From: Kudoa neothunni
Taxonomy: Eukaryota > Animalia > Cnidaria
Reading direction: 5' to 3'
Assembly (NCBI GenBank): GCA_964304625.1
Contig: OZ199839.1
Coordinates: 6,277,200 to 6,341,199, forward strand
DNA: 64,000 bases
Under the pieces are notes generated by a model. The model ran no database searches. It had not been told where the DNA came from and was given only the letters and a program-made list of their open reading frames with translations. The position numbers and the translations under genes were made by a program. Every line of letters begins with the position of its first letter. Within the stretch, counting starts at the first letter, position 1. This document shows positions 3,879 to 61,645 of this stretch, in pieces.

Positions 3879-6800
3879 ATGATAGTAATATCGGAGAGAG
3901 TGAGGTATTTATCCTCAATGTGCATCTTATTTCTTACGTGTAATTTTTTAATTCTTTATAATAACTATTTCTTGTTAGTTTTTCTTGGAAATATCGTCAC
4001 GACACACGACATCGATAATAATATAATGAAACTGAATTTTCAATCAAATACTAAAAACTTTGTTGTATCACTTTCTGGGTACAATATTGAAAATAGCCAC
4101 AGGAAATGTGCTCTGCAGTATTATGATAATGATGATAGGTCACTTAAAGCTATTCCAGATTGTAGCACTAATATTAAAAATGCTAAAGATGATGCAGATT
4201 CAAAAAGTTGCATTTATGATTGCAAAAAAATTGAAATAGAATTTGACTATGAGAAATTTAAGAAAATTAAAAATTTAAGATGGTGTCAAGGGAAGAGCGA
4301 AGATGATGTAAAAAGGTGCCCTATTAAGAGAGTATTTAATGTCAAAGGTATTTAAATATCATTTATTGTTCAAAAATTATTATATAAAGAGCTATACATA
4401 AAAAGCGTTCACACTGTTGTAAAGAATAATTACGATTTTTTCGTTTCCGCTACAAGTAAAGTCAATAAAGGTTTTTCTATCAAAGTTGACGATACAGAAG
4501 AAACTAAGCAGGATCCAACTGATGACTTTTACACTGCAAAAACTAAAGCTCTTCATACAAAATCATATCAACCAAAATATTTGGTTATATTCAATGATCA
4601 ATCCCCAGAGATATTTCTCAATCCTAAAAAACCAACTGAAGATTGGTTTATTGCGACTGGAACAAAACAAACTGTTGAAACAAAGCGTTATTATACAATA
4701 CAGCTACAGAACCCAGAACCATCAAAGTTATGTTACTTCGGTATAAAAGAAATTGACGATTCACACTTTTCGTCATCGTGTTCAGATATGAATAAAGCTG
4801 GCCCATGCCTACAACCCTGCTATAAAGCAACATTGTTGCATTCAAGTGATTTTAACTTCGCTCAAGTGCTTATAAAATCAATCGGTCAATCATCAACAAA
4901 AGAATTTATTCAAACTGTGACATGTATTTAATTGAGTACTTTTAACTTTTTTATAGATTTTTAGTTGGTAGCAGTCAACTCTCCGTTGACTATACAGATA
5001 ATATTAGTCAGATGACTATCGATTTATCTAACTTAAATAAAAATCAAGATGGCGCTTCAGAAGTTGGAGAAGTGACTACAGAAGTAAAAATAATGAAAAA
5101 ATATTTGGGTATTGAAAATTTCGATGAGGCTGCATCATGTAATGGTGGTTGTGATGGTTTCTCTCAAAAAACTATAACAAGACTTTCACCGCTAACTGAA
5201 TACATTCTAAAAATAAAAATAACAGGATTAAAAACTTTAGATTCGCCAGAAGTGAAATATTATCATCTATATTTTTATTTCAAAACCAAAGGTAATATTG
5301 TATTTAAATATTTTTTTAAATGGTTAAATAGGGGAAAAATTTGAAAGCGGAAATAAAGTCACAGCAACGTCTACTACTGATATACATACACAGTTATCGC
5401 TGACTATCGCCAATCTTTTTGCAATTAAGTCTAATAATGACGCCATATGTGAACTTTACTACTTTGAGGTTGACAATGAATCAGCGAAGTTCCCTGCTAC
5501 TTGCAAAAAAGATAATAAAAAAATGTTTTGTTCTGATACTTGTAAAGGTCCTTTTACGATTATAAACCTTAACCCAAAAACGAACTACAAAATCACTGTT
5601 TGCTCCAAAGGTTATGCTTGTATTGATAGCTCTGAAGTTTATAGTATTTTTACAATAATAACACAAAAATTATTTTAAATAGCTACTGGAATCGAGGTAA
5701 ATGTACAAAAGTCAGATGACGCTAGCGCAACAAAAACGATTATCACCATGACTGCTTCTTCAGATGGAAACCTTGGAAATTCTTGGAGATATATTTTGAT
5801 GGAAAAAGAATCTTTAGCAACTATTGTTGATTGCTTGAACAACGATTGTTCTTCCGATTTAACCTCTAATACAATAAATATTAAATGGCAAATTCTGACT
5901 GACGATATTTCTTACGAAGTAATTGTAGTTAATGAAGATTACGCTTTGCCAACAAAAATTGAAACATCAAGTAATTAATTAATAGAAAATTAAATGCATT
6001 TGTTGTAGGAGGATTTGTTGAGGGTGATCACAAAATGATTATGCGATTCTATGCAAATGAACAAAAATATAAAGTGAAATTCAAGAATGATTTGTTCACT
6101 GATAAAGATGAAGTACAATGCACTGTTAAAATATTAAATGATAAATTAACTAACTATGAAAATGGCGGTGACAATAATACGGAAGTTAAAAAAACCTTCA
6201 AAGAGCTTAAAAAAGGATTTATTACTATTAATCATAAAAACCAAAACATGCGGAATTATATTTCCGTCACTTATTCAGTCAAAAAAACAACTGAACCTGG
6301 TGAATCGGTAATAACTTCAAAAGGTCCTGTGAAAGTATCGATTTACATACTTTTAATTAATATTTTTTATGTTATTGACAAATTTTTTTATTAGTCACAA
6401 ATAACCAGTACAATACAAGGCTCATCAAAACCGACCACCTTCACTGTAGGGCGGGTCTTTTCGTACTACATTGGTAATATCAATTTTAGTAATTATTGAA
6501 ACTTGTCTTAGATCATTATGAGGAGATTAAACACACAGCGACATTGCATGGAGACAATATCAAACTTTCAGTAAATAAGTGCCCCTTAAGCTGCGATGGA
6601 TACAAGGATGAAACCAAGCTAGATTCTTGCTCTGTAAATCAATCTGGGTCACCATGTAACAATGATAGTTGTTCATTTCAATTCGACGAATTAGTTGAAG
6701 ATTATTACATACGTTGTCCAACATATTTCGACTTCCACTATTTTTATGAAAATACTTTTATTAAAAATTACGCACCTGTCTTCAGCAGATTTTATTATGA

Positions 6801-7091
6801 ATTAGCGGTAAATGATGAGAAAAATAAACTGACCATTAAATTGGTTAATGAAGAACCTTCCGAAATATGCACCTTTGAATGGATTGACGCAACTAGCTCA
6901 TCTTCTAATCGATTTTTTTCAAACAACTGTGATAATAATGCCAACTGCATTTATAGTTTATGTAGTAACGTTACGTTTGGAGATATTCCTTCAAGTGTGA
7001 AAGCAGTAAAAATACGCGTTCTCAAATTAGGAATGGAACCTACCATTGGCTATCAAAATAATATTTATATATGTAAGGTTCGAATAATATT

Positions 7092-7126
<35 letters not shown>

Positions 7127-10100
7127 AGTGGAACATGGTAATGATGTCCCTGTGGCAACGTCGAGCGATGGTGGAATGATAACAGTTAATATAATAGATA
7201 AAAATAAGGACGAAAATGGTCAAGCAATAACTACTGCATCTCCTGTAATATGCGAGATGAAATTTTGGAATGTGTATGCTCCATTAATTAGCGAAACTGA
7301 AAGGAAAACTGTTGACAGCCCAACAAATTGTATTTTTGGAGAAATAAATATTACACCAAATCCAACTAATCTGCTAAATGATGTTATGGTAACATTAAAA
7401 AATATACCCAATTATTCACCTAGAAAATACTTTTACCATAAAATAAGTAATTATTACTAATTCAAAATGTTAAAATATATTTTGTAGCCCAATCAATATC
7501 TCTTTCTGTTCAAGATAATGAAGTTGATCTTAATGCAGACGGTTTCACACTTACTCCGGACACCAGCACAAATATTTGTAAAATTTACGTAAAAGAAAAT
7601 AAAAAGCTTTATTACTATCCTGCTATATGTTCAGAAAATAAATTGTGTGTGGATAAATGCAACGTAAAATTTAACATCATTGGGTTGCATTCAAATACCA
7701 ATTATGTTATAAAAATTGTTCCTAGTGGAACTTATGCGATCAAAACGATTGAAAATAAACAAACAAGTATAAGTTTTATTTGTCATTAAATATATTATAA
7801 ATAGATGGAGATACAATTGTATTCAAAGTTTCGCCTGATTCTACCAAAAATAATTTAATAAAAACCAGTGCAAATGATGCACTTGATAATACTGAAAATT
7901 GTTATTACCAGTTTTATGTTCACGAAGATGGAAATAGTAACAAAAATAACTTTACATTGATAATTTTTGTTTAGCTTCACCCACACGTATAAAACAGTCA
8001 TGTGTTGAATGCGATAAGGGAATAAATAATAATAATAAGGACATCAAAAAATGTGGCAATATTCAGTTTGATCATAATCTCTATAACAATAAGCATAATT
8101 ACAGATTAATGATCTATGCAGAGGGAAAATCTTCACCATATAAAATCGTAATTCCAGGTAGAATTCATCAAATTTTATTGTGTAATATTTCGTTAGCATT
8201 TTCTCGAATTGGGAAGATATCACAACAATTTTCTCAACAATCTCAAAATGTAATTACAAAATTATTAATTACCTTGTCAGGATTTTCAACTGCAAACAAA
8301 TGCGCCCTGAAAATATCAAATTTTGATGATAATCCAAGATTCATTAAACCAACTTGTTCTTCAGTTGAGAAAGACAATTTATGCTTTATGCCGTGTACAG
8401 AAAAAAATACTGATGTAGGATATATTAATTCCAAAATTGATCGGTACATATCTGTTTGTTATGGTGAAACGGATGAAAAAGCAAAAACATGCAGAAAAGC
8501 TAGAGTTTTCTCGCTCAAAATGGGTAAGTATATGTTTTTCATTCTTAATTAAGTTGTCAAAATAAAATACATTATTTTTAAAGAATGTTGACGTATTGAT
8601 ATTATTTTGCCTATTATATTTTAGGAACCAATCAAAAAAATACTTACAAAATAACTCATGGTGACGGCGAAATAAGTCTTTCTTATAAGACAACATCAAA
8701 AAATAATTGGATGCTGCATGTCGATGGAAAAATTGATCCAACCTCGGACAATAAACTAAATAATTTAGATGTAACAAGTTACCCAAATACGGAAGAAGAA
8801 AAAACCGCAACTTTCTCAATCGATAGATATATGAGTTACTATAAGTTTAGCTCAACACTTTTATGGCCTGGAATATTCTACTTCACGAATACTACCGTAT
8901 TGAATAGCACTATTCCTCTAAAATCAGAGATTATTTATTCTATAACGGCTGTTGAAAATAACAATAACCAACTGGAAATTAAATTCTTTCCTGGACCATA
9001 TAATGACGAAATGTGCCGTATAAAAGTATTCGAAGTGGATTCTAATGGCAACGATCAATTAAATAAAGTTTTAAATGAATGTGATAAACCAGAAAAAGGA
9101 TGCTATCAACTTTGTCAAGATGCTATTATTAATTTCAAAGGAGAACATCAAAAGATTGGCGTAACTGTTAAAAGAAGATTTGATTCTGTTGGATTTAAAC
9201 AATATTTTAAAAGTAATATTTAGATTATTTATAAATTTATTTTTTCATAGGAGGAGACAAAAACTTTGAATTGAGTGAAATTACTAATTCTGGACTTAAA
9301 CTTACTGGTCTACACAACTACAAGAGTATTAAAGAAGGAGAAAATGAAGCAGCATGTATCATTAAGATTCGTAAAGCAAATACAATATCTCCTGAAACGA
9401 TACCTCAATGTAGTGATGGTGGTTGTGATATTAATTGTAAAGAGTCATATACTATTACTGGTCTTACAGCCGGTACAAATTACATGATTTCCGTCACAGT
9501 TTCGAATCTTGGTTTTAGCGAATCTTATGTCAAAAAAGTCTTTTTTAGAACAAGTAAATTCAAATACATCCATCATAACATTTATATATATTTAGTTGAA
9601 GGAACTGGGTTAGCTACATTAGTAAATTCAGATTTAACGATTAAGGCAGGCACTGCTACAGTGACACCTTTTCAAGACGATAATTCACTTCCAATATGTC
9701 GAATTTATCTCAGAAGAAAAGTTCAAATGTCTCCAAAATTTATGGCTACATGTGAAGGAATTGGAGCTTGCGAGCATAAATGTAACAATACATTCAAAAT
9801 AGTAAATCTGGAATTGGGTGTTAATTACGAAGCAATCGTCGAACCGTCAAATGGGAAAAATGAGAAAAAATTTGAAATTGAAACAAGTAATAAATATTTT
9901 ATCATGTTTTAATAAAAAAGGTGAATAGCTAACGTCGAGACAAATATTGCGTTAACGTACGACAAAGATAGTGATATAAAAATTGACGTAATTTTTACTG
10001 AAAAAAAGACGACCGCTAAATGTCCATTCATGTTGCACGAGAAAACTCATGAAAATAAACCGGAGCCAATAGTTCTTTGGTGCAGTGACGAGGAGGAATG

Positions 10101-10796
10101 TTCAGCCAATAAATGCGTTATCAGTCTCAATGGGCTATCGAGGGAAAAGGATTATAAACTAAGTGTGAAAGTGAAGGACTTGTCAACTTATAGAATCCAT
10201 GATATTCCTTGTAAAATATAAACTTAAAATTTAATAATTTCATTAAAACAAATAATAATTTATATGATAAAGACTTGAATATTTCAAAATCGCAAGGGTG
10301 ATATTAATATTATCAAAACTAAATATATGTTTAATGATATTTTTAGTAAATTTTACATCGAGATTGATGTAATCTGAATATCTATAGAAGAGCATAACAT
10401 AAGGAGTGAATATATCAATATTATAGTAGATGGCATTGTTCAAAAAGTAATTAGGAAAGTTGAAACGGGGTAATAATATCATTATTTAACTGTTATAATT
10501 AAATTTATTTTAGTATACTTTTTTTAAATTTATTAACACTAAAGATACATGTAGATAGTAAAGAACAGTACGACCAAGAAGCTGCGAAAAATATTAATTC
10601 GTAAATGTAAAAAGATGTTTCATATTTTTAATTTTTAATAGGTCGGTTGGAAGATATATGTAAAATGGTATACATTTCTATGTGATTTATTTATTTTAGT
10701 GTTTACGCAATGATTCCAATTGTGGCTGGATTATTGGTAGTGATAGGATTAGTAGTTTACAGAAGGAAACCCAACGACGATACCTATGAGTTGTAA
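3879..10796 (+). CDS. Paralog A: large Cys-rich type I membrane protein with tandem FN3-like modules (~1,900 aa estimated, >20 short introns)
   Basis: Spliced N-terminus MIVISERVRYLSSMCILFLTFFLGNIV (intron 3940-3978). Collinear ORF chain 3879-10221 joined by GT-AG introns. Repeats end in FN3-type motifs (LSPLTEY, LNPKTNY, LHSNTNY, LTAGTNY, LELGVNY). Last exon VYAMIPIVAGLLVVIGLVVYRRKPNDDTYEL*. Confidence 0.85.
7095..7122. repeat. (TA)n microsatellite inside an intron of paralog A
   Basis: Uninterrupted TA run just before the tttag acceptor; the equivalent introns of B and C have shorter runs. Confidence 0.8.
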
Positions 10797-13139: not shown

Positions 13140-13144
13140 TTAAC

Positions 13145-13438: not shown

Positions 13439-13586
13439 TATTATATAAATTAATATAAAATAAATTTTTTTATATTTTATTTTAAAACTTTAAACATTTC
13501 AAATCATTCATGAGAAAATTTCATATTGATTCTTAAAATTAATTAAAAAGTATCTCTTGAACTAGGATTACGAGAAACCTGAACCA

Positions 13587-19016: not shown

Positions 19017-22000
19017 TCACTTCTTCTTCAATACCACGATTCCACCTATCACTACGACCACAACCACAGCAACGCACGCGATAATGATTCTACAAAACAG
19101 TTAGTTTAATTATCAGCATCTATAAAATATTCACATAAGTTTTGTTTTATTCCTAAAAAGTATTGAATTAAAAAAAGGAAGTTTACTAAGCTCACCCTGA
19201 ACTACTCTTTGCTCCTACAATACATAACTCTAAACTACATTATAAACAAATAATAAACCTTGTTGTATGTCAGCACCGCCAAAAATTGTATCGTCATGAA
19301 CACTGTAAACAGTCAAATAATAGTTATTTCCATCAGTTAAATTATTTATTTTGAATTCTTTACATGTCACAAAGGCAGTGCATCTGTCTACGTTTCTTCC
19401 CATGCAAGATTTTACTACCGCATTTGATTTGACACTACTGTTACGTAACTCCCATTTGCATTTTGATTTATCGTTCATACTGGCTGGAACTGTGGTGGTT
19501 ACAATGAAACTGTTCCCATCACGTGTAATGACGACTGATATCAATTTGGAAGAGTCAGTTGGGTTTACTCTTGGTGTACCTAATATAAGTTTCGTTGAAA
19601 AAATTCTTAATAGAGACATTAAATGTAGTACTCGATTCTATGATATGCTCTTTTTGTGAGGATTTCCCGATAGCTGTGACTAAAATTTTGTATGCATTTG
19701 CTGCTTCATACTCGGGAAATGTTATGGAATTGCAAAAGGGATTTGAAGAACATGTGTTAATGCTGTTCGCAGCACCATCACGTTGTGTATCTGAATTATC
19801 TGAAACTGACGATTTCGCCGTTGGCATTAGACCACCGTCTGCTACAACTGGTACAGCAATTCTAGCTATACTGAGATCTGCAGAACTTGAACTGGGAGGA
19901 GCAGCTACTGGGGGTGTCGGTGCTATTGGAGCGGTAACAGATGTGGTTACTTTCGGCACCGCTGGACATGTGTAGAAGTCTGTGTAATCGTTACCAGTCT
20001 TCTTTTTTACGATATAACTACAAGTTGCACTTGGATCCACGGAATTTAATCGTGCTATTAATGACAAACCATCCAAGGTGATCTTGTGTGTTATTGTTAA
20101 TGTTGTTAATGCTATAAAAAATTTAAAGAATAAATTATAAGTTCAATAACCTGTTTGTATATTTGTGTAATCTTTTATATCGTAGTCCTTATGTGCAATC
20201 ACTCTGATGTCATAAGCTGTGTTTGGCTCAAGGTCTTCTATCGTAACTTGTTCACTACACATTCCTCTACACGGACTGATGCCATTGCATTTCGCATGGT
20301 AAAAACTGTTCAATCCAGTTGGACTTACCAAATACTCACAGGTTGGTTCAGTTTTCTTTTCATCATTTGTAGTTGAAGTAATAGATATAGCTGTAAGAGA
20401 GACTGTCGTGTCTGTATTTGTTGGTGTGGTAGTTCCATAATCTTTATTTGCTCCCTTTGCTATATAATTCGTTATTTTATAAAATAAATATAATGATTTA
20501 CTTGTTCTTAGGAATATTTTCTCTTTATAACTTGCTGGAAGATTAGTGCCCTCAAATTTTATCTCCATCATGTATGCTTTCCCCGCTGTAAGCTCCTGAA
20601 TCATCAATTTTGTTGTGCAGTCAGTTTTGCAATTGCCATCAATTGCACTGGTACTATCACATTTTGCGAGGGTTAGAGCGGTTGGCCTTGGTTTATCAGC
20701 AAAATAATGTTCAAGAGTACACGTAGTAAATGTTGGTGCAGATGCTGCTTTTAGTGAGGAAACATCTAACTTAACACCAGCGCCGGTATGAGAAGAAAGC
20801 AATCCCTCACTCGATTCAGTAAATGCTAAAGAAAATAATAAAAAAACATATTAAATTACGGATTACCAAATTTAGTTTTTTTGTAACCTTCCAAACTAGT
20901 ACCAGTAGCTCTTATGTCGTGATGCCTTGTTTGGATTAAAATTTTAAATAACTTTTTTTCCGCATCGCCAATTAATTCGACATACTTACAAGGAGCATAA
21001 CACATTTTACCAGTACCGCCGCAAACAGACGTATATGATTCTCCGTTCGCTGAATCCTGACCATCTTTAATACTGAATAGACATATTTCGGACGATGGAG
21101 AATTGGTGAATTTAATTCCTACCTTGTTTCCAGTTTTTTTAACAACGTAAAATTGAGGATCATAAATATCTATATTTTCCTTCATATATTGATTGGGCAT
21201 ATAGTAAAAGAAACTGGGATAATTTTTGCATCTCACTTCGTAGTGCGGTAACAATAAATCAAAGTCAACTTTGTTTGCTGAATTCCCATTATTACATCCT
21301 TCCCCTTTGGTACCAACTTCATATTGGATATCTTTATAATAAATTGGGCAATCTACGGGAGCACAAGTTTTGGCTAGGAACTGCAGCTGTTTATTATGGC
21401 TGGTCGTGTCTGTCTGTGTAGACATGATAATTTGTGGATTGGCCAATAAAGCTAAATTCAATCGATTTTCATATTAAATTCAATTAATTTACGTATTGAA
21501 TATCCGAATACTTTTGAACCTGCTCCTTGAGTTTTATCTTTAATATCAGCTGTGTTTGCGCCTACGAAAACATATATGTATTTGGTTCTTGGTGATAGTT
21601 TTTCATAGGTGATTGTATTCACATCACTATTACAATCAACAACGCAATTATTTGGAGCAGCACTGTCATTAGCACTGCAGCTGTCAATGTTTAAAAACGC
21701 AGCATCTGGTACCGAAGCGCTAGAACTAGTAGCCTTTGCAATTTCTGCCTCGTTAGATCGCCTTATAAGACATTTTTGGCCAATTCCATATTCAGAGCCT
21801 CCAAGTATGAGTTTAATTCTGTCTGGGTCAGCACCTGAAGCTTTCAAAATCTGGTATTTTAGAATTTTCGTTGGGGATGCAACTGCCGGTGATGCTGAAT
21901 TAGGAGAACCTGGATTTAGTGCAGCATTGATTATGCCTGATCCTGATATTAAAACGCCTAAAATTACATTAGTATTAAAATTAACTCGCGAAGATACCTA

Positions 22001-22031
22001 AAACAAGGTAGAGAAATCCAGCTATTTCCAT
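19017..22031 (-). CDS. Paralog D: short divergent Cys-rich FN3-like type I membrane protein
   Basis: Spliced start MEIAGFLYLVLGVLISGSGIINA. ORFs 21458-21847, 20856-21461, 20143-20802, 19555-20076 and 19230-19619 are linked by short introns. Motifs LSPRTKY, LTAGKAY, LEPNTAY, LTDGNNY and PSSEICLF (cf. EPSEICTF in A). Two micro-exons, then IIIIACVAVVVVVVIGGIVVLKKK*. Confidence 0.85.
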
Positions 22032-27414: not shown

Positions 27415-30400
27415 ATGATTGTAACATCGTTAAAATGGAGATTTGTTACAACATTATATTTGTTTATTTTTTCAGGTAGTCATTTCAATTAAGTCATATT
27501 TTGAATATTTATTAGCAATAATGAGTAAATTTATCTCTACACAAGACATTGATAATAATATAATGAACTTAAGTTTTTCATCGGATATAAATAAATACGT
27601 TGTTTCTCTTTCTGGTTATCACCTTCAAAATAGCAAAAGAAAGTGTGCACTACAATATTATGATAATAAGGCTTCGTCATTAAAAGTTATTCCAACGTGC
27701 GCTACGGACATTACGAAGGCAACGGATGATTCCGCCTCAAATAAATGCATCTATGATTGTAAAAAAGTGGAATTGAAATTCAGTTGGGATCAAATTAAGG
27801 AAATGAAATATCTAAGATGGTGTCAAGGAAAAGATGAGGATGAAGTCAGAAATTGTAACTTAAAGAAAGTTTATAAAATAAAAGGTAATTTAATTACAAA
27901 TGAAATTTAGTGATAACTTTATGATAGATATATATGTTAAATCATCATTAAGGGTTGATAAAACAACCGACCAATTTACTATTTACATTAAAACTAAAAT
28001 TGATAAGGGATTCAACCTCAAATGTGACTCTAATAATGAAGTTACTCATAATGCAAGTAACAATTTTTACAAAGAACAATCAATTCAACTAAAAACTAAA
28101 TCATACCAACCAAAATATGCTGTTGAATTCAATGACAAATCTCCCGAAATATTTCTGAATCCCAAAAAACCTATTGAAGATTGGTTTATTGCGTCTGGAT
28201 CAAAATCAGAAGCTGATAATAAGCGCTATTTCACAATAAGACTCCAAAATCCCGAACCGTCCAAGTTATGTTATTTTGGAATAAAAGATATTAACGATTT
28301 GCGGTTTTCATCTTATTGCTCTATAAGGAATAAAGCTGGTCCGTGCCTTCAACCCTGTTACAAGGCGACATTATTCTATGACTCTGATTTGAATTTTGCC
28401 CAAGTTCTTGTAAAATCAGTTGGAAAGTCAAATTCAAAGGAATTTATTCAAACTGTTTTATGTATTCCTTAATTGTCTTACAAATTTTAAAAAATTTTGT
28501 AGTTCGTAATAATCAACCCACTGACGTTCTTTCGAATAAACAAAATAATCGAATTACAGTTAATCTTTCAGAATTAAATAAAAATGAAGATGCTGATAGT
28601 GCAGTAGGTGCAGCAAAAATCACAGATGTAAAATTAATAAGGAAGTTTATGGGGACTGATAGTTTTGGAGATAACGTAACATGTGAAAATGATTGTACTT
28701 CATTCGTTTCAACAACTATAACAGGACTTGAACCGTTAACTGAATACATTTTAAAGTTAAAAATCACGGGACTAAAAGCATTAGATTCACCCGAAGTGAA
28801 ACATTATCACCATTACTTTTATTTCAAAACTAAAGGTAAAACGATTTTTAAAAATATATCTAAATGTTGAATAGGAATTGAGTTTAGCAATGGTAAGCAA
28901 ATAACACCATCGGTCGGCGTTGGAAACACAAAATTGACGTTAACTCCAACTAATCTTTTCACTGCTGGATCTAATAATAATAACAACGCAGAATGTGAAC
29001 TGTATTATTCTGTGGAAAATGAGAAATCCAAGCTACCTGCTACTTGTGAAAAAGATTCAAAAAAATTATTTTGCTCAGACATCTGTACTAGTGAATTCAC
29101 AATTATAAATCTTGATCCTATTACACACTACAAAATAACTATCTGCTCCAAAGGTTACACATGTGCCGAGAGTGACTCCGTATCGAGTAATTTTGGTAAG
29201 TTAAATGTTATTTAATTTAAATAGCAAATGGAAAAACTGTTACTATAAATAAATCAGACGATACTGCAGCAAAAAAGATCATTGCTACAATGTCTGAGAC
29301 TCCTAATGGAAATACTGAGAATTCCTGGCGTTATACTTTATTGGAAAAAGATTCCAATAAAATTATAGTGGATTGTCTGAATACCGATTGTACTCTTGAA
29401 ACGCAAACAGATTCAGGATCAACGAAATTAGAAATTCCATGGTCTACTGTTGACCCAGAAGTTGCATACGAACTAGTTATAATAATTATAGATCAATCAA
29501 AACCAGTGAAATCAGAAATAACAAGTTGTTAAATGAATTAATCACCATTAAATATATAAATTTAGGGGACGCTGAAAAAGGGACGGGTGATATGATTCTA
29601 ACATACGATAAAACGCAAAGAAATTATAAGGTGAAATTTACAGGTGATTTATTGTCGAAAAGCGGTAAGACATGTAAAATTAAAATATCTGACAATGCGT
29701 TATCTGCATACGTCAATGCTGGTGACAGTAGTTCAGCAATCGAAAAAGATTGCGATCAACTTGTAACAGATGTTACTATTAATCGTAGTAGTGGAAACAA
29801 GCTGGCATATATTTCAGTTACGTATTCGGACACGAAACCTTCATCTGCTAAATCAACTATTGATTTATCAATTTTATCTAAAGCAACTATTGGAAAAATG
29901 TTAAATGGTGATTACATAAATGAGGACAAGAATTATCTTTCTAAATCTTCAGTAGAAAGAAAAGAAGGTGCAGTCCCTGATAGCACCGTGGGACCAGAAC
30001 AAACTGGTCTCTTGGAAGATACAAAAAAAGCTGGAGAAGGAACGGAACGAGATGAGCTTAAAAAGACTGTTCCAGACTCAGCACTAACGAAAAAACCCGC
30101 TTCACCCCCAAAACCGATCCCCTTCACTGCAGGAAAGGTCTTTTCGTACTACATAGGTAATCTGCTTTGATGATGTAATATAATGTTGTTAAGATTTTTA
30201 CAATGAATTAACGCATATGGCTGAATTACAGCAAGATAAAATTAAATTTAGTGTCAATAAGTGTTCTTTAAATTGTAATGGATATAAGGATGAAGTGAAG
30301 GAAAGTTCCTTCCATGGAACTACATCTGAGAATCCCGGTAACATTGAAAGTTACTCAATAAAGTTTGACGAACTAGTTGAAGACTATTACATAAGTTGCC

Positions 30401-33400
30401 CAAAATATTTTGACTTTCATTACTTCTATGACAACACATTTGTAAAAAACAATGCACCATTCTTCAATAGATTTTATTATGAATTGGCTTACAGTGATCC
30501 AGTTAATAAGTTAACGATAAAATTAGTTAACGAAGAGCCTTCTGAAATATGTTCTTTTGAATGGATTGACGCGACTGCATCATCTACTAATAGATTTTTC
30601 TCAAACACCTGCGATAATAATGCAAACTGCCTTTTTAGTTTGTGTAGTAACGTTACATTTGGAGATATTCCAACGGGTGTAAAGGCAGTAAAAATACGCG
30701 TTCTCAAATTAGGGATGGAACCTATCGTTGGCTATCAAAATAACATTTATATACGTAATCGTTAAAATAATGTATTATATAAATATATATTCTAGTGAAA
30801 CATGGCAATGATACGTCCGTGACTACATCTGATGACAGTAAAATCAAAGTAAATATGAGCGATAAAAATAAAGACGAAGATGGTCAAGCTGTCAACAGCG
30901 CATCTACTGTAGCATGTGAATTAAAAATCTGGAATGTATACGCTCCGTTGGTTAAGGAAACTGGGAGAAAAGCTGCTAATCCATCTACTACTTGCATTTT
31001 TGGAGAAATGAGTATTACACCAAATCCTAATGATTTGCCAAATGATATTATGATAACAATAGCAAATATACCAAATTATTCTCCTAGAAAATACTTTTAT
31101 CATAAAACTGGTATTTTATGTAATTTTAGGTAAGCTATTTTACTTGTATAGGACAAACAAATGCTCTTTCTGGTGGGTCAATATCGGCTACGCCAGCAGC
31201 AAGTGGATTCACATTTACTCCAAGTTCTACAGATATAAAAAGCACATGTTCAATTTACGTGCGAGAACATGATAAATTATATTATTATCCAGCTATATGC
31301 ACAGAAAATGTATTGTGTATAAAAAAGTGTAATTTGCCGTTTACTATCATTGGATTGTATTCTGGCGCCACCTATGATATTATGATTGTACCTAGTGGTA
31401 ACTATAAGTTTCATATTTTAGAAGGCCAGAAAACAAGTAACAATATTCCGATTATGGTTTCATGGATAATTATAATTAGCTGGTAAAACAATTGAATTCC
31501 AAATTTCATCTGAGTCAACAGGTAAAAATCTAAAAATAATACCGACAGAAAATATCGAGAATGATTCAAGTGTTGACTGTTATTATCAGTTTTATATGCA
31601 TAAAGAAGGGAACAGTAATAATAAAAGTAAATAATCTTTTAATTTGTTTTTTAGCCTCACCAACGAAGATACAAAAGTCTTGCGTTGAATGTGAAATTTC
31701 AACTAGTAATCAAAAAAAATGCAATGATATTCAGTTTGGTTCAGGCATATATAGTAATAAACATAATTACAGATTAATGATATATGTAAATGACCAATCA
31801 CCACCATTTAAATTAGAAATTCCGGGTAAACAAAATATAAGTAATTTTTGTAACATTATGACTAGCCTTTTCCCGCCGAGGAAAACTACAACAAAAATTT
31901 GAACAAACAGTTAACAACGATATTGGGAAATTCTACGTTTCATTATCAGAATATCCAGATGGAAATAAATGTGCCCTAAAACTATCCAATTTTGAAGATG
32001 TCCCTAATTTTGTGAAACCACTTTGTACCTCGAATACTGACAATAACTTATGCATAACTGATTGCACGTCTCAAAATGTTGAAATTGGATATATTAATGC
32101 CAATATCGATCGTTATCTATCAGTATGTTACGGTAAAGATGACAACGATGCGAAATCCTGTAAAAAAATTAGAGTTTTTCCAATAAAAATGGGTAATTAT
32201 AATAAATACTATTTTAATAATGCCGTTATACTGGCATATTATAATTCAATGTTTTTAGATTATAATCAAAAGCATACTTATTCTATCGGTCACATTGATG
32301 GTAAAGTTCGTTTTTCCTACAAAACAAACTCAAAAACCAAATGGACGGTGTATGCTGACGGAGAAAAAGACTTATCTAGTGATGCAGAAAAAAAGAAATT
32401 AGATGAAGATAGTTTCTCTGATACAATAACAGATAAGTCTGCAAATTTCTTAGTTGACAGATACATGGGTTATTATAATATTAACTCAACACTTTTGTGG
32501 CCAGGAATTTATTATTTTACGAATACTACCCTATTTAATGACACTATTCCCCTAAAATCAGAGATTATATATTCCATTTCAGCCGTTGAAAATAACATTA
32601 ATAACTTGAAAATTCGATTTTCTCCTGGTCCCTATAATGACGAAATGTGCCAAATTAGTATATTTGAAGTGGATTCTGCTGGTACAGATCATATGAGAAA
32701 AGTTTTGAACGTCTGTGAAAATAAAGAGAATGGTTGCTATCAACTTTGTCGAGATTCTGTTATTAACTTCACAGGAAACCATCAAAATGTTGGTGTAATT
32801 GTGAAAAGAAGATTTGATTCGGCTGGTCTCAAACAATACTTTAGAAGTAATTGAAATCCAACATTATTAATAAAATTTTTTAGGAAACGATATTGGCTTT
32901 AATCTCACTGACATAACGAGTAATAGTGTCAAACTTATTGGGCTTCAAAATTACAATAATATAAAAAAAGAAAATAATCCCCAATGCACAATTAAAATAT
33001 CTAGAGCAAATACTATATCTACTGAAACCATGGCTCAATGTAGTGGTAATGAATGTAACAAAGACTGTGCCCAGTCATATTTGATTACTGGCCTCTCGGC
33101 TGGTACAAGTTATATAATTACAGTAACAGTTACAAACCTTGGTGTGAATAATGATTATATCAAAAAAGTTTTCTTTAGAACAAGTAAATGTAGCTTGTGA
33201 TCATATTATTAATTGTATTTAGTTGATGGAGAACAGCTAACAGAATCAAATTCTCCAAACGCTATCATTGCAAGCACTGCTACTATTATACCTTTTCAAG
33301 CAGACAATTCGTTCTCATTGTGCAGAATTTATCTACAGAAAAAGGATGATTCAAATGCAAAATTTATGGCTTCGTGTGAAGGAATAGGAACCTGTGAAAA

Positions 33401-34410
33401 TAAATGTGACAATCCATTCAAAATTGTTAACCTTGAATTGGGAGTAACATATGATGTTACTGTGGAGCCATCTGATGGCAAAGGCCTAAGAACCTTCGAT
33501 ATTACTACTAGTAATAGATTTTTGATTGTATTATTATAAAATAAGTAATAGCTAACGTGGATACTTCGGTTACTTACACATCTTATGGAGATTATGGTAT
33601 AGCAATTAATGTATCGTTTACTGACAAAAAGAAAACTTCAAAATGCCCGTTTATGTTGCACGAAAAAACAGATGTTGGCAAACCAGAACCAATCATTTTT
33701 TGGTGTAATGATGACGAAGAAGAATGTTCATCCAACAGTTGTAATATTGGTATCTACGGATTATCCAGGGAAAAAGATTATAGGTTGAGTGTGAAAGTGA
33801 AGGATTTATCGAAATATAAAATTCACGAGATTCCATGTAATTTTGAAATTAATATCTAACTTATTGTTTTTGGTTAACTAATAATATGATGTACTGAAAG
33901 ACTCAAAAATATCCAAACATTCAGGGTAAAAAATATTTCTAAATTATTTTAATATATGGTTTAGTAAATTTTTATGGATTATTTTTAAACTAACATACTA
34001 GCAGAAGAGCAAAATATAAGAAGTGAATATACAAACATTGACGTAGGTAATATTTTTCAAAAAAAAATTATAAAAATTGCACAAGGGTACATTGCATACT
34101 TTCGAACTTTTCTAATATATTTTTAGTAAATTATGATAATAAGCTGTTTTAAAAAATCTGTAGATAGTGAAAGAAAGCACGAATATGAGGCCGCCAAGAA
34201 CAGTCATTCGTATTTTAAATAATATTTAATTTTTTAAATTAAATTAATTTAGGTCTGTTGGAAAATATATGTAATGATAATTTTGTGTAATCTTTTGGAA
34301 TAATTCTTTCTAGCTGTTACGCAATGATACCAATCGTAGGAGCATTGCTAGTAGTGATAGGTTTGGTCATGTTCCGAAGGAAACCCCAAGACGTTGCTTA
34401 CGATTTATAA
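27415..34410 (+). CDS. Paralog B: large Cys-rich FN3-like type I membrane protein
   Basis: Spliced start MIVTSLKWRFVTTLYLFIFSAIMSKFIS. Nearly exon-for-exon collinear with A. Ends CYAMIPIVGALLVVIGLVMFRRKPQDVAYDL*. No disabling lesion noticed. Confidence 0.85.
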
Positions 34411-36706: not shown

Positions 36707-36739
36707 TATATTAGGATAGATAGATAGATATAGATATAG

Positions 36740-51888: not shown

Positions 51889-54800
51889 TTATAAATCGTA
51901 AGCAGCGTCTTGGGATTTCCTTCGGAACATGACCAAACCTATCACTACTAGCAATGCTCCTACGATTGGTATCATTGCGTAACAACTAGAAAGAATTATT
52001 CCAAAAGATTACACAAAATTATCATTACATGTATTTTCCAACAGACCTAAATTAAATTAATTTAAAAATTGAAATATTATTTAAAATACGAATGACTGTT
52101 TTTGGCGGTCTCATATTCGTGATTTCTTTCACTATCTACAAATTTTTTTAATTCAGTTGATTATCATAAATTTACTAAAAATATATCAGGAAAATTAGGA
52201 AACATGTAGTGTACCCTCTTGCAATCTTTACAATCTTCTTTTGAAAGATATCACCTACGTCAGTGTTGGTATATTCACTTCTTATATTTTGCTCTTCTGC
52301 TGGTGTTAGTTTCAAAATAATCCATAAAAATTTACTAAACAATATATTAAAATAATTTAAAAATATTTTTTTTTACCCTGAATGTTTTGATATTTTTGAG
52401 TCTTTCAATACATCATATTATTAGTTAACCAAAAACAATAAGTAAGATATTAATTTCAAAATCACATGGAATCTCGTGAATTTTATATTTCGATAAATCC
52501 TTCACTTTCACACTCAACCTATAATCTTTTTCCCTGGATAATCCGTAGATACCAATATTACAACCGTTGGATGAACATTCTTCTTCGTCATCATTACACC
52601 AAAAAACTATTGGTTTTGTATTGGTATCGTCTGTTATCTCGTGAAACATAAAAGGGCATTTAGAAGTTTCCTTTTTATCAGTAAACAATACATTAATTGC
52701 TATACCACTATCACCATAAGATGTGTAAGTAACCGATGTATCGACGTTAACTATTAATTATTTTATAATAATACAATCAAAAATCTATTACTAGTAGTAA
52801 TATCGAAGGTTCTTAGGCCTTTGCCATCAGATGGCTCCACAGAAACATCATATGTTATTCCCAATTCAAGGTTAACAATTTTCAATGGACTGTCACATTT
52901 ATTTTCACAGGCTCCTATTCCTTCACACGAAGCCATAAATTTTGCATTTGAATCATCTCTTTTCTGGAGATAAATTCTGCATAATGGAAGCGAATTTTCT
53001 GCTTGAAAAGGCGTAACTGACGCAGTGGTTGCTTCTATAAATTTTTGAGAAGTTGAATGTGTTAACTGTTCTCCATTGGCTAAATACACTTTGTAACATG
53101 ATTATAAGCTGCATTTACTTGTTCTAAAAGAAACTTTTTTGATATAATCATTATTCACACCAAGGTTTGTAACTGTTACTGTAATTATATAACTTGTACC
53201 AGCCGAGAGGCCAGTAATCAAATATGACTGGGCACAGTTTTCGTCACATTCAACATTACTACATTGAGCCATGACTTCAGTAGATATAGTATTTTCTCTA
53301 GATATTTTAATTGTGCATTAGGGATTATTTTCTTTTTTTATATTATTGTAATTTTGAAGCCCAATAAGTTTGACACTATTACTCGTTATGTCAGTGAGAT
53401 TAAAGCCAATATCGTTTCCTAAAAATGTTATATTTATATTTCTGGATTTCAATTACTTCTGAAGTATTGTTTGAAACCAGTCGAATCAAATCTTCTTTTT
53501 ACGATTACACCAACATTTTGATGGTCTCCTGTGAAGTTAATAATAGCATCTTGACAAAGTTGATAGCAACCATTCTTTTAATTTTCACAGACGTTCAAAA
53601 CATTCTCTGTTTTATCTGCACCAGCAAAATTCACTTCAAATATACTAATTTGGCACATTTCGTCATTATGGGGACCAGGAGAAAATTGATTTTTCAATTT
53701 ATTATTGTTATTTTCAACTGCGGACACAGAATAAATAATCTCTAATTTTAGAGGAATAGTGTCATTAAATAAGGTAGTATTCGTAAAATAATAAATTCCT
53801 GGCCACAAAAGTGTTGAGTTAATATTATAATAAGGAAGTGGCTATATCTCAGGTAATCAATATCTCTAAAACTACTCAATATTGTTTTCCCATATTCCAC
53901 ATATCATCTTATATTTATCTAACTTAAGTTTTTGTAGATTTTTGAAAAATTAAAAAAAAATTATTTTTTCTTTGTGTGACCATACACAAGTCCAACAGTA
54001 GCTGGGTGCGATTTTTTATTTTTTTAATATAATTTCATCAATTAACATCATTATGCACAAAATATAGAAATAATAATAAATTTCTGAGTTATGTATAACT
54101 TGAGAGCGCAATTTCTCTTTCTAATTAGCGTGGCACAGGATGAGTTCAAATTTGTTTGCAATTGGAAAACGATTTCGTTCTTTCGAGAAACTCGATAATG
54201 CTATAAAAAATTACGAAGAATCAAACTTTTGCAATCTTTATAAATACCAAGCGAGGACTATTTCGAATATTCGAAATAGAATTACAAAATCAATTGACCA
54301 ATCTCTGCGGTATTATGAAATTACATATCGTTGTATTTTCAGTGGCAAGAATAAAACAAAATCCGATGGAATTAGAAACAAACCGGAATTAAAGGGAAAC
54401 TGCCCCGTAGTTTTATCTCTTAGGACCTCTGTTGGTGATGTAGCACTTGAAATACGTTCTAGTATATTAGAACATAATCATGATTTAAGTGCAATGCTAT
54501 ATCGAAATCTACCAAAACAACGAAAAATTGACCTAAATGACCTAAATCTCGCGGAATTAATTCACCTTAGGGCCAATAAAAAATTAATTCAAAATAAAAT
54601 TTACAACGAAACGGGTAAAAACATCCGTTTGAAATCCATCCACAATATTAGAGCAAACAAAGACTCATTCTGTGATAACTTATGTGTAATAGAGAAAATG
54701 TTGAAAGAAGATTTCAAATGTTACTTTAGGATTTTATATGATAATCATAAAGTCGTTAATGGAATTTTATCCTGAGGTTATGTTCGTTGATGCAACTTAT

Positions 54801-57800
54801 AAACTCCTTAATTCAAGGTAACTTTTGAAAACGGATGAATAATTTTATAATTTTAGGGCCCCGTTATACATATCTGCTGGGGAGGATTCTTTTGGTTTGA
54901 CTCATATTTCGAGTGCCTGCATTCTCTACGACGAGACGGAAGATTCCATCCAATGGTTTTGTAATACTTTGGCAAAATTTATACCAAACTTATCAAAAAA
55001 TGTACATACCATTGTTACAGATAAGGATGAAAAGCTAAGAAAATGTCTCAAATTAAGTTTTCCACTATCATCATTCATTTTATGTAAATTTCATGTGAAT
55101 CAAATTTTTCAAAGACATCACCTTTAACAAATTTGAAATATCTTCTACTAAAAGACAAGAGATTTTAAGTTGTTTACAAAAAATGATGTACCCGACTGAC
55201 TACAATAAATATTTACATTACGTTGACCAGATTCACGATTTTAAAAATCCCAAATTAAGTGAATATTTCAAAAGAAATTGGGAAGGAATATACAATGAAT
55301 GGGTCATTGATATCAGCAATACGAAAAATCTTTACGACAACGAAACCAATAATCGCCTTGAAGTAATAAATTCCAAAATTAAGTGTTGGCCAACTTCATC
55401 CAAAGTTTTTTTTAAATTCTAAGTTCACTTAGAATTGAAAGGGAAGTTTCTTCAATTAATCAACTGTATTATGAATCAAAAGATATTCTCAACAACAACC
55501 AGGTTCTACACTATAAAGAATGTCTGACGAAGTATGCATTTATCATGCTTCGAAAAGAACATAAATTCTTGGACAATGCTGCATTATCCTCTAACTCAAA
55601 TGAAACCACAAGTCGATCAACGTGTCATTGTTTATTTTATCGCTCATTTTCATTACCATGTCGCCATATTCTAAGTTACAGGTTATCAGAAAAACTCCCG
55701 TTATTCTGTGAAACATTATGCAATGATCGATGGAAAAAGGCATACGGAATGAAGTTTTTAAATGCGGAATCTACAACTCAAAATAATACAGAAAATCTTC
55801 CCACTGTTTTTCTTGAAAAGAAACAAAAAATTAACATAAAGACATTTGGACAAAAGTTGAAGTACGCTTCAAATTTTACAACCAAACTAACCAACACAAC
55901 TTCCGAATTTTGCGGAGAATTTTTCGAAAAATCAATAAAATCAATAAATCTATTGGAAAAAATAATTAGAAATCACGATGTCATGGTTATCGATCAGTTC
56001 CTTGATACATATGATTTTTGTTTATAAATGAAATATTAAATTTTATATAATTAAAGATGAAACTGAATTTCAAGAAAATGTGTAAAATTTATAATTTTAC
56101 TTTAACTAATAAAAATTAGGAGTCATCGATAAATTTAATAGAAATCTCACTTACCAAAATACCAAAACTTAATTCCAGTGATGGTTTTAATCCTCTGGAA
56201 GAACAAATTGATTGTAACGATGAATCAAACGCCATCGTAGAACCTCAATTAAAAGGTTAAACCTAAAAAAAATTATGCTAATTTTTGTTTAGATCTAGTG
56301 ATTCCTTCTAAAGTTACATCGATTGGTCGACCACGAGGAAGTCGTTTAACTGCAATCGGAATTATAAAGAAAAAGAAATAAAATTAGAAACTTTAAAATT
56401 AAATATATAAAAAAATTTAATTTTGAGAATAATCCTCTACATGTGTCATATGATAGCTGTTTTATTGAGTGATCGCTTAAACTAATAATTAAATCCATTA
56501 TTAGTTTTATTTCATATAACGTGAAAAATGTTAATTTCTTAAAAAAAAGACAAACATTATTATTATTTCTATATTTTGTGTATAATGATGCTAATTGATG
56601 AAATTATATTAAAAAAATAAAAAATCGTGCCCAGCTGCTGCTGGACTTGTGTATGGTCACACAAAGAAAAAATAATTTTTTTTTAATTTTTCAAAAATCT
56701 ACAAAAACTTAAGTTAGATAAATATAAGATGATATGTGGAATATGGGAAAACAATATTGAGTAGGTAGTTTTAGAGATATTGATTACCTGAGATATAGCC
56801 ACTACCTTATAATAACTCATGTATCTATCAACTAAGAAATTTGCAGACTTATATGTCAATGTATCAGAGTAACTGGTTACAATCAGATTGCCTTTTTCTG
56901 AATTGCTAAATGAGTCTTTTTCTCCATCGGCATACACCGTCCATTCGGTTTTTGAGTTTGTTTTGTAGGAAAAACGAACTTTACCATCTGTGTGAGCTAT
57001 ACAGTAAGTATGCTTTTGATTATAATCTAAAAAAATTTAATTTTAATTTACCGATAAAATAGTATTCATTTCAAAATTTGTTATAATGTAAAAAAATAAT
57101 ATTTATTATAATTACCCATTTTTATTGGAAAAACTCTAGATTTTTTGCAGAATTTCGCTCGCATCAGTACCATTACTGCCATAACATACTGATAGATAAC
57201 GATCAATTTTGGAATTAACATATCCAATTTGAACATTCTGCGACGTGCAATCAGTTATGCAGAAGTTATTGTCAGTGTTCGTTGTACAACATGGCTTCAC
57301 AAAACTAGTGAGATCTTCGAAATTGGATAGTTTTAGGACACATTTATTCCCAGTTGGAAATTCTGATAGTCTAACATAGATTATCCCAATTTCGTTATTA
57401 ACTGCTTTTTCAAATTTTTGATGTAGTTTCCCATGTCGAGAGTGGGCTATTCATAATGTTACAAAAATTATTTATATTTTATTTACCCGGAATTTCTAAT
57501 TTAAATGGTGGTGATTGGTTATGTGCATATATCATTAATCTGTAATTATGTTTATTACTATATATGCCCGAACCAAACTGAATATCATTGCATTTTTTTC
57601 GACTACTGGATGAAGCATCACATTCAACGCAAGACTTTTGTATCTTCGTTGGTGAGGCTAAAAAACAAATTAAAAGATTATTTACTTTTATTATTACTGT
57701 TCCCTTCTTTATGCATATAAAATTGATAATAACAGTCAGTACCTGAATCATTCTCGATATTTTCTGTCGGTATTATTTTTAGATTTTTACCTGTTGTCTC

Positions 57801-60800
57801 AGGTGAAAATTGGAATTCAATTGTTTTACCAGTTAATTATAATTATTCATGAAATCATAATCGGAATATTGTTACTTGTTTTCTGGCTTTCTAGAGTATG
57901 AACCTTATAGCTGCCACTAGGTACAATCATAATATCATAGGTGGCGCCAGAGTACAATCCAATGATAGTAAACTGCGAATTACACTTTTTTACACACAAT
58001 TCTTTTTCTTCGCATATAGCTGGATAATAATATAATTTATCATGTTCTCTCACGTAAATTGAACATGTGTATTTTGAAGCTGCATTATCTGGAGTAAGTG
58101 TGAATCCATTCGTTGCTGGCGTAACCGATATTGACCCACTAGAAGGAGCAGTTGTTTGATCTAAATTAGTCAAATAATTTGCTAGATCTACAAAAACTAC
58201 CAGTTTTATGATAAAATTATTTTCTAGGAGAATAGCTAGGTATATTTGATATTGTTATCATAATATCATTTGGCAAATCAGTAGGATTAGTTGTAATACT
58301 CATGTCTCCAAAGTTGCAGTTACTAGATGGGTTAGTATCTTTTCTCCCAGTTTCCTTAACCAAAGGAGCGTATACATTCCAGATTTTTAATTCACATGCT
58401 ACAGTAGATGCGCTGTTGATAGCTAGACCATCTTCGTCTTTATTTTTATCGCTCATATTTACTTTGATTTTACTGTCATCAGATGTAGTCACGGACGTAT
58501 CATTGCCATGTTTCACTAGAATATATATTTATATAATACATCATTTTAACGATTACGTATGTAAATGTTATTTTGGTAACCAACGATAGGTTCCATCCCT
58601 AATTTGAGAACGCGTATTTTTACTGCTTTTACACCCGTTGGAATATCTCCAAATGTAACGTTACTACACAAACTAAAAAGGCAGTTTGCATTATTATCGC
58701 AGGTGTTTGAGAAAAATCTATTAGTAGATGATGCAGTCGCGTCAATCCATTCAAAAGAACATATTTCAGAAGGCTCTTCGTTAACTAATTTTATCGTTAA
58801 CTTATTAACTGGATCACTGACAGCAATTTCATAATAAAATCTGTTTAAGGCTGGTGCATTGTTTTTTACAAATGTGTTGTCATAGAAGTAATGAAAGTCA
58901 AAATATTTTGGGCAACTTATGTAATAGTCTTCAACTAGTTCATCAAATTGAATTGAGTAGCTTTCAGTGCTACACTGTGTCTCAGATTGAGCTCCAGAGG
59001 TGGGATTAAGCTTAACTTCATCCTTATACCTATCACAATTAAGCAAGCATTTATTAGCGTCTAATTTTATATTTTCCCCTTCAATTCTTGCCAAATGCCT
59101 TATCTCCTCGTAAGAATCAACAAAATTATATTAATTTGTCAAATTAGATTTACATATGTAGTATGAAAAGACTTTTCCTACAGTGAACTTGATAGGAGAT
59201 GGTGGCGGTGGAACGTGTGCCGGCGTTGATCCCTCTTGTTCGTTGTTAACCAAAGCGTCTTTTTTATCCTCGTTTTCTTCTGTCCCATCTTTCTGGGTTC
59301 CTTTGCTATTCAGATCAGTATCCTGTTTTTTTCCTGTTACCCTTTGTGGGTCACCTGATTCGCCTGATCCATGCCCTTCTGACTCCCTAGGGCCTGAGAG
59401 TGTCGGCCCTTCTGACCTTTCTATGGAAGATTTAGAAAGATGAGTCTTTTCCCCATCTACGTAATCGCCATGGAACATTTCTCCAATAGTTGCTTTATTC
59501 AGAGTTGATAAATTAATTGCTGACTTAGCAGTGGAAGATTTTTCATCCGAATACATAACTGAAATATAATTTAGTTTGTTTTCATTACTAATATCAATAA
59601 TAACTTCTGTTTCAAGTTGGTTGCAATCTTTTTCGATTGCTGAACTACTGTCACCTGCATTGACGTATACAGACAACTCATTGTTAGACTTTTTAATCGT
59701 GCATTTTTTATCATTTTTCTCGAATAAAGTACCTTTAAATCCCACCTTATATTTACTTTGTGTTCTATCGTATATTAGAATCATATCGCCCGCCCCCTTT
59801 TCAGCGTCTCCTAATTAAATATACTTAAAGCTAAATTACTTATTTAATAACTTTTTATTTCCTCTTTCATTGGTTTTGCATTATCTATATTTATCGTGAC
59901 TAATTCGTATACAACTTCTGGGTCAATAGTAGACCATGGAATTTCTAATTTCGTTGATCCGCCACTTGTTCGTACTCCAGGATTGCAATCGATATTTAAA
60001 CAATCCAATATAATTTTCTTTGTATCTTTTTCCAATAGAGTATAACGCCAGGAATTCCCAATATTTTCATTAGAAGTAACAGACATTGTAGCCACAATCT
60101 TTTGTGTTGGAGTTTCGTCTGATTTAGTTATTGTAACAGTACTGTCACTAGCTATTTAAATTAGGCAATATTTAACTTAAATAAAAATTACTTGATACGG
60201 AGTTACTCTCGGCACATGTGTAACCTTTGGAGCAGACAATTATTTTGTAATTTGTTTTAGGATCAAGATTTATAATTGTGAATTCACTAGTACAAATGCC
60301 CAAACAAAAAAATTTGTTTGAATCTTTTTCACAGGTAGCAGGTAACTTGGATTTCTCATTTTCCACCGAATAATACAGTTCACATTCTGCGTTGTTATTA
60401 TTAGATCCAGCAGTGAAAAGACTAGTTGGAGCTAATGTCAATTTTGTGTTTCCAACACCGACCGATGGTGTTATTTGCTTACCATTGCTAAACTCAATTC
60501 CTATTCAACATTTAGATATATTTTTAAAAATCGTTATACCTTTTGTTTTGAAATAAAAATATCGGTGATAATGCTTCACTTCAGGGGAGTCTACGGTGTT
60601 TAGTCCCGTTATTTTTAACTTTAAAATGTATTCAGTTAACGGTTCAAGTCCTGTTATAGTTTTTGAACTGAATGAAGTACAGTCATTTTCACATGTTACG
60701 TTATCTCCAATACTATCAGTTCCCATAAACTTCTTTATTAATTTTACATCTGTGATTTTTGCTGCACCTACTGCACTATCAGCATCTTCATTTTTATTTA

Positions 60801-61645
60801 ATTCTGAAAGATTAACTGTAATTCGATTATTTTGTTTATCCGAAAAAACGTCAGTGGGTTGATTATTACGAACTACGAGATTTTATAAAAATTATAAAAT
60901 AATCATTAAATTACAAGTAACAGTTTGAATAAATTCCTTTGAATATGACTTTCCAACTGATTTTACAAGAACTTGAGCAAAATTCAAATCAGAGTCATAG
61001 AATAATGTCGCCTTGTAACAGGGTTGAAGACAGGGGCCAGCTTTATTCCTTATAGAGCAATAAGATGAACACCGCAAATCGTTTATATCTTTTATTCCAA
61101 AATAACATAACTTGGACGGTTCGGGATTTTGGAGTGTTATTGTGAAATAGTGCTTATTATCAGATTCTGATTTTGATCCAGACGCAATAAACCAATCTTC
61201 AAAAGGTTTTTTTGGGATTAAGAAATATTTCTGGCGATTTATCATTGAATTCAATAATATATCTTGGTTGATACGATTTGGTTTTAAGATTAATTGATTT
61301 CTCTGTATTAAAATCGTTACTTGTATTATGAGTAAATTCTTCAATAGAGTCAGCTTTCACTTTGAAACCTTTGTTAATTTTACTCTTAATGGAAACGGCA
61401 AATTGGTTATTTGATTTTTCTACGCCAGTATAGTTTGAAGATAAATATCTCATAACTTGATTTATACAATAACAGACATAATTGATGTTACCCTTGACCT
61501 TATAAACTCTCTTGATAGGACAATTTTTGACATCATCTTCAGTTTTTCCTTGACACCATCTTAGATATTTCATTTTCTCAAATTCATCCCGGCTGAATTT
61601 TAATTCCACTTTTTTACAATCGTAAATGCATATGTTTGAATTGGA
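51889..61645 (-). pseudogene. Paralog C: B-like surface-protein pseudogene
   Basis: Collinear with B and ends RRKSQDAAYDL*. Lesions: 5' end absent, frameshift at ~61205 (A7 vs A6), stops at 58217 (TAC>TAA) and ~53317 (CAA>TAA), frameshift at ~53580, MULE insertion. Confidence 0.9.
53834..56806 (+). mobile_element. MULE defective copy 2, inserted in an exon of paralog C
   Basis: Perfect 9-bp TSD TTATAATAA (53825-53833, 56807-56815); near-identical to 15607-18643; splits DRYMSYYN|INSTLLWPG. Confidence 0.95.

Follow-up and report, generated by a model that had tools for sequence, protein, structure and literature searches.

A 64,000-nucleotide stretch of the genome of the myxozoan Kudoa neothunni, hereafter the window (C2:6277200-6341199), carries four related genes, A, B, C, and D, that belong to a large family of predicted surface proteins. 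The assembly, made from yellowfin tuna, has been described as three chromosomes of 40.2 Mb with one TAAACC telomere and a circular mitochondrion (10.1101/2024.11.01.621499); it amounts to 40.26 Mb in four pieces (17.15, 12.04, and 11.05 Mb plus one of ~18 kb), and we find a (TAAACC)n array at one chromosome end. The spliced models of A, B, and D were assembled from coordinates and are DNA-based predictions. Genes A (3879..10796, + strand; 23 exons, 1941 amino acids (aa), 64 Cys) and B (27415..34410, + strand; 22 exons, 2007 aa, 63 Cys) are intact members of a long type, and gene D (19017..22031, - strand; 10 exons, 875 aa, 29 Cys) is an intact member of a short type; none of the three models contains an internal stop. 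The fourth copy, C, is a damaged relative of B. A previous interpretation of the window made without database searches (the sequence-only reading) had listed these four genes and credited them with one transmembrane (TM) segment, a tail of 3-11 aa, and a signal peptide present in A, B, and D and lost in C, all of which our models bear out.

A, B, and D each have a strong hydrophobic segment near the C end, consistent with one TM helix, and a weaker N-terminal hydrophobic stretch; with pseudogene C they are predicted to encode type I membrane proteins with a beta-sandwich ectodomain. Gene A, for example, would consist of a signal peptide, ~18 FN3/Ig-like modules, a stalk, a TM segment at about aa 1910-1930, and an 11-aa tail. 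The tails measure 11, 11, and 3 aa in A, B, and D; A ends in Y-E-L, B in Y-D-L, and D in 3-Lys. A Tyr-Asp/Glu-Leu C-terminus recurs in 17 of the 20 resolved long-type tails and looks like a class II PDZ-binding motif, so that PDZ binding may be its role. N-glycosylation sequons number 14 (A), 18 (B), and 4 (D). The ectodomain is very large, as had been claimed, but it is Cys-rich only in a modest sense: cysteine makes up 3.1-3.3% of each protein and CxxC motifs number 0-1. Over their full length, A and B share 54% identity. D aligns with A in three separate stretches at 21-24% identity, which suggests that the long form is approximately a triplicated short form.

The introns are ~41 nt long, almost all are in phase 1, and their positions are the same in 20 further paralogs, in agreement with the kept intron positions that the sequence-only reading saw in the window; these 20 long paralogs also keep the exon order of B. 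One paralog that is intact elsewhere has an insertion of ~1.1 kb (a 1100-bp gap) in the usually 40-nt intron between exons 12 and 13. The most conserved exon is a two-domain exon that is common to D-type genes (6514..7071 on the + strand in gene A), and the least conserved in the family, with 35% mean identity, is exon 7 (29566..30156, + strand, in B), which encodes a module plus a length-variable charged/Pro-rich linker. Exon 6 of D (19632-20111, - strand) contains a Pro/Ser/Ala-rich insertion of ~60 aa within a module, between cysteines, like the linker of long-type exon 7.

Most ectodomain exons have phase-1 boundaries on both sides, and each of these codes for one module or two, ~95-110 aa apiece, which by exons gives ~18 modules in A and in B and ~7 in D. 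The four-Cys module has the spacing C-x15-17-C-x4-9-C-x3-C. Across 102 aligned modules L71 and Y77 are invariant, forming the Leu-x-x-x-x-x-Tyr of the FN3 tyrosine corner, and the four cysteines are nearly so; the module profile matches fibronectin, titin, and Dscam at this corner. A typical four-Cys module, exon 16 of A (9253..9552, + strand), matches Pfam fn3 at E 2e-4, and its AlphaFold2 model is a beta-sandwich with pLDDT 89.4. When this model was compared with known structures (Foldseek, VIA-align, Atlas), FN3 domains were retrieved, with a best Z of 10.6 and an rmsd of 2.4 over 86 aa and a TM score of ~0.65-0.7 to the best matches. The Pfam fn3 gathering score of 25 bits is not reached, the best score being 21.7 bits. 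The model of the two-domain exon (6514..7071) is of low confidence (pLDDT 61) and contains two beta-sandwiches with Z up to 7.5. On this modeling the modules are a divergent member of the FN3 superfamily, one being folded confidently and the others assigned by homology. Modules with two cysteines have kept the outer pair in some cases and the short inner one in others, and this suggests nested disulfides in the four-Cys module (pairs 1-4 and 2-3).

The cluster in the window is a small part of the family. With one long-type exon as query we found 66 distinct long-type loci genome-wide, 40 of which have another within 50 kb; with one D exon as query, at least 150 D-type loci were found at E < 2e-49 among 465 candidates, and among the 150 exon matches listed only one contains a stop. 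The family thus totals at least ~215 loci spread over three chromosomes, and the clustering noted in the window holds. Some near-identical neighboring loci could be uncollapsed haplotypes. Within 1 Mb of a chromosome end lie 20 of the 66 long loci against 9.8 expected, although clustered loci are not independent and most loci are interstitial. Among 23 long copies analyzed further, ~13 look intact and ~10 are damaged, some of the damage possibly being assembly error at about sevenfold coverage.

Database searches were run exon by exon and were length-limited, and thus do not show that the family is absent from other myxozoans; among 1.8 or 5.8 billion proteins they returned no named homologue, in line with the earlier statement that the family could be assigned to no described protein. 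The only relatives outside the genome in these searches were fragments from ENA ERZ28624939 and from the SRA runs SRR31175926 and SRR33529766. One SRA run yielded a contig of 15% GC on which several modules are recognizable (24-33% identity); the same run contains the nearest mtHSP70 relative (73%). Based on these two matches, the family probably predates K. neothunni. The public samples with relatives probably contain undetected myxozoans. The genome paper makes no mention of FN3 proteins, surface proteins, or gene families (10.1101/2024.11.01.621499). To judge from these genomic data, this is an undescribed and greatly expanded family in an obligate parasite.

Several lines of evidence describe how the paralogs have diverged. 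Mean identity per exon is 35-64%, and Cys columns are conserved at 87-100% compared with 46-74% for other columns, which upholds the proposal that the cysteines are kept while the sequence between them diverges. Pairwise dN/dS has a median of 0.29, with values of ~0.35-0.45 for the closest pairs and 0.24-0.61 per exon, and the 6-kb frames remain open in the ~13 intact copies at a median dS of 1.4. In three-class codon models, 7-30% of sites are near neutral in most exons. Purifying selection covers the whole ectodomain and not the loops alone. The paralogs are also recombinant mosaics: A and a paralog 70 kb downstream are 65% identical in their 5' exons and 94-99% identical in their 3' exons, and a single ancestry was rejected in six of seven paralog triplets (permutation p ~0.001). 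The selection and mosaic results together indicate that the paralogs have diversified by duplication, by drift at sites that tolerate change, and by exchange of segments rather than by detectable adaptive substitution.

The long-type genes have a further peculiarity just upstream of the TM exon, where all 23 long paralogs contain two intervening sequences of 78-100 nt with the anatomy of [D1,2] stwintrons, that is, introns nested in introns. In A, candidate 1 (10297..10387, + strand) consists of a single G, a 49-nt internal intron, and the rest of a 42-nt external intron, and candidate 2 (10469..10554, + strand) of a 44-nt internal and a 42-nt external intron; in B, the two candidates measure 39 + 41 nt (33925..34004, + strand) and 40 + 38 nt (34086..34163, + strand). 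All 46 sites start with G-G-T and have a midpoint acceptor TAG followed by TA while the remainder of the sequence diverges, and because these sites descend from two ancestral ones the counts are evidence of conservation and are not independent. By comparison, a G precedes the donor in 101 of 293 ordinary introns, and the TAG-TA core occurs in none of 21 long ordinary introns. Internal and external parts are 38-57 nt long, within ordinary intron size (median 41 nt), and once the internal intron is out, the leading G lies next to TA, which restores a consensus donor. With two-step removal the frame stays open, and is conserved, through the stalk, the TM segment, and the tail up to its stop in 20 of 23 copies; 1-nt exon indels affect the remaining three. 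If either external intron is retained, the frame closes within 10-66 codons and excludes the TM exon in all 20 resolved copies; such retention, if it occurs, would yield a secreted form. The stalk introns of D are ordinary and not nested.

This anatomy fits the definition of the [D1,2] stwintron (PMC8469720), and from it we infer splicing in two steps. A plain noncanonical G-G donor, a possible alternative, would also preserve the reading frame, but it leaves the invariant internal acceptor-donor unexplained. Four other readings were tried and rejected: a single intron with a cryptic AAG acceptor (our first dynamic-programming model) and a single intron with the second TAG as acceptor each fit some paralogs only, treating the middle of the intervening sequence as coding results in stops and frameshifts, and a [A2,3] stwintron would need the next exon to begin with G and leads to a stop. 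The stwintron studies we found, mostly in the freely accessible literature, concern only ascomycete fungi, and we regard the arrangement as a candidate novelty for animals. The pattern is not enriched genome-wide (113 occurrences compared with 158 in a reversed control), and 46 of the 89 places listed fall in long-type genes. Outside the long-type loci, six stwintron-like patterns lie in C2:2587750-2643991 (- strand) and two in C3:2222979-2223202 (- strand), in related AT-rich stretches that may represent another gene family with nested introns.

Pseudogene C (51889..61647, - strand) is 85-91% identical to B. Its 5' end is gone, namely the first exon and half of the second; three stops interrupt the frame, which is also shifted at least once, and a MULE of 2.97 kb (53834..56806) has inserted, with terminal inverted repeats of ~255 bp and a 9-bp target-site duplication (53825-53833, 56807-56815). 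This MULE is 97% identical to a copy at 15651-18653, 35 kb away, and the near identity of the two copies points to a local element that has been active recently. Where the 5' end of C is cut off, it borders on a piggyBac-like element (61643..63252, + strand) that is 98.9% identical to 35827-37435. Pfam matches confirm the dense transposon context that the sequence-only reading described, the gaps between the genes being filled by Tigger/pogo, MULE, Gypsy integrase, piggyBac, and ISXO2-like remnants. The window also contains a 780-aa open frame of importin-beta/HEAT-like character (39542-43176, - strand) with a 1.15-kb partial tandem duplication at 96% identity; it has no Pfam match and no PDB sequence match. 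Elsewhere in the assembly, the single 18S match found (C2:5424779-5428248) is 5'-truncated and joined to unrelated AT-rich DNA, and the main rDNA array may be absent from the assembly or may have been missed by the 18S search.

With a probability of about 0.55, we favor the hypothesis that these genes form a lineage-specific host-interface repertoire of Kudoa. Each gene would encode a type I membrane protein with FN3-like beta-sandwiches in series, each phase-1 exon supplying one or two of them and conserved cysteines stiffening each, the long form amounting to about three copies of the short form's core. Such disulfide-stiffened rods, anchored by a tail that carries no enzyme and that in the long form ends in the conserved PDZ-like Tyr-Asp/Glu-Leu, would project from the parasite surface and contact host tissue, whether for adhesion, for ligand binding, or as a protective coat. 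Diversity would arise by birth-and-death duplication and ectopic recombination between paralogs under purifying selection on the fold, and in the long-form genes the two nested introns upstream of the TM exon would each be removed in two steps. That K. neothunni is an obligate parasite with a reduced gene set counts in favor of this hypothesis, and stage-specific antigen change has been described in Kudoa thyrsites, the molecules being unknown (PMC8481699). The gene models with their predicted topology, the FN3 fold, the number of loci, the frames kept open at low dN/dS, and the mosaicism support the hypothesis as well, and the FN3 surface families of tapeworms set a precedent for it (PMC2671473). 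Several observations weigh against it. Parasite reads were not found in three RNA runs. A host-facing antigen is often under positive selection, and none was detected here, since the codon models, fitted to ungapped columns of 12 exons other than exon 7, gave no significant site class with dN/dS above 1 (best p 0.07). In addition, the 23 long copies were picked as the closest to A, and contacts between cells of the parasite itself would be an equally plausible function for a large surface family. The FN3-like, Cys-stapled surface family of the sequence-only reading, with its clustering, pseudogenes, and mosaics, therefore stands, whereas the site models lend no support to its variant antigens; a "surface adhesin/coat repertoire" is better supported than the more hypothetical "variant antigen."

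Antigenic variation proper, in which one or few members would be expressed per cell or stage and switched to evade fish antibodies, with silent copies and pseudogenes as recombination donors, would suit the large number of clustered loci, the many damaged long copies, the strong mosaicism, a conserved anchor joined to a variable ectodomain, and a possible excess of long loci near chromosome ends (the clusters not being independent), and antigen switching in myxozoans has been suggested in the literature (PMC8481699). Given that no site class exceeds a dN/dS of 1, that most loci are interstitial, and that K. neothunni lives mostly inside muscle cells, we consider it an unlikely, if serious, contender. 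Still more doubtful is an elaborated version, in which an FN3-based coat diversified by segment exchange would use the stwintrons as a splicing switch, two-step removal giving the anchored form and internal-only removal or one-step mis-splicing giving a stop before the TM exon and a shed decoy. It is also rather improbable that the parasite's cells use the family as a code to recognize or adhere to one another, in cell-in-cell development, mating, or strain recognition as in Hydractinia Alr, Dscam, or protocadherin clusters, or that it is a set of receptors with which the annelid host is located. Adhesion molecules are typically FN3 rods with short PDZ-like tails of this sort, each paralog is under purifying selection, and the cnidarian Alr genes are clustered, with one domain per exon, pseudogenes, and an FN3-like domain (PMC9546547); yet no Ig V/I-set domain was seen among the modules folded and no ITAM/ITIM in the tails, the family is dispersed over three chromosomes, and an animal that has very few cell types would hardly seem to need so large a set.

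The remaining explanations fare worse than the host-interface repertoire. If transposons had multiplied a degenerate receptor gene in a mostly neutral way, so that few copies matter, this would account for the transposon context, the insertions in family members, and the many damaged copies, but the explanation is largely refuted by the low dN/dS of long frames that stay open at high dS and by the 149 of 150 D-type exon matches without a stop, and we regard it as very improbable. Least credible of all is an orthologue of a conserved low-copy receptor such as usherin, an R3 receptor protein tyrosine phosphatase (RPTP), or a cytokine receptor. The FN3 fold would agree with such an origin, and usherin also has a short PDZ-binding tail. 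The sequence-only reading had named usherin or RPTP orthology as one outcome that would overturn it. Given a copy number above 200, gene models that lack any LamG, EGF, phosphatase, or kinase domain, and exon-by-exon searches that returned no named homologue, such orthology is refuted, and a truncated receptor of the same sort may be the ancestor.

Myxozoans are known to change antigens between stages, the molecules in Kudoa are unknown, and Kudoa spoils the flesh of tuna and other fish. More than 200 loci for one surface family in a gene-poor parasite would point to a main host interface, and the family offers concrete targets for expression studies, diagnostics, and vaccines. If confirmed by reverse transcription PCR, the stwintron anatomy would extend to animals an arrangement described in ascomycetes. 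Gene predictors would lose the frame of the TM exon in long-type genes because of the nested introns. [quoted passage not shown]

Usherin and the R3 receptor phosphatases are type I membrane proteins that, like the Kudoa family, carry extended FN3 arrays. The Kudoa family differs from them in its high copy number and four-Cys module; no LamG, laminin-EGF, or phosphatase domain was found in the 10 ectodomain exons scanned or in the tail. The Alr proteins of Hydractinia share with it a cnidarian origin, clustering, diverse single-pass proteins, exon-by-exon domains, a disulfide-bearing FN3-like fold, and pseudogenes. However, Alr proteins have 1-3 V/I-set Ig domains, one FN3-like domain, and signaling tails and are encoded by 41 loci in one complex (PMC9546547), whereas the Kudoa proteins would be all-FN3-like rods with tails of 3-11 aa from loci on three chromosomes; no Ig V/I-set was seen among the modules folded (the N-terminal module was not folded separately), and no ITAM/ITIM occurs in the tails. 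Giardia variant-specific surface proteins (VSPs) and the products of the 18 VSP-like genes of Sphaerospora molnari (10.64898/2026.02.11.705288) are likewise multigene products with a signal peptide, a disulfide-rich variable ectodomain, one TM segment, and a short conserved tail. VSPs contain more than 10% Cys and more than five CXC/CXXC motifs, compared with 3% Cys, 0-1 CxxC, and an FN3 fold in Kudoa, and on these two counts the Giardia comparison drawn in the sequence-only reading fails. FN3 surface families are also known in tapeworms, namely the taeniid oncosphere antigens EG95 and 45W (PMC2671473), which like the Kudoa family are a multigene parasite surface family based on FN3 domains with a probable role in adhesion. 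No sequence homology was found between the two. EG95 is GPI-anchored, contains a single FN3 domain, and has sites under positive selection, whereas the Kudoa proteins would have 7-18 Cys-stapled modules and a TM helix, are encoded by more than 200 loci, and show no detected positive selection. The Kudoa family is a member of neither the EG95/45W nor the VSP-type repertoires, but its design is like theirs.
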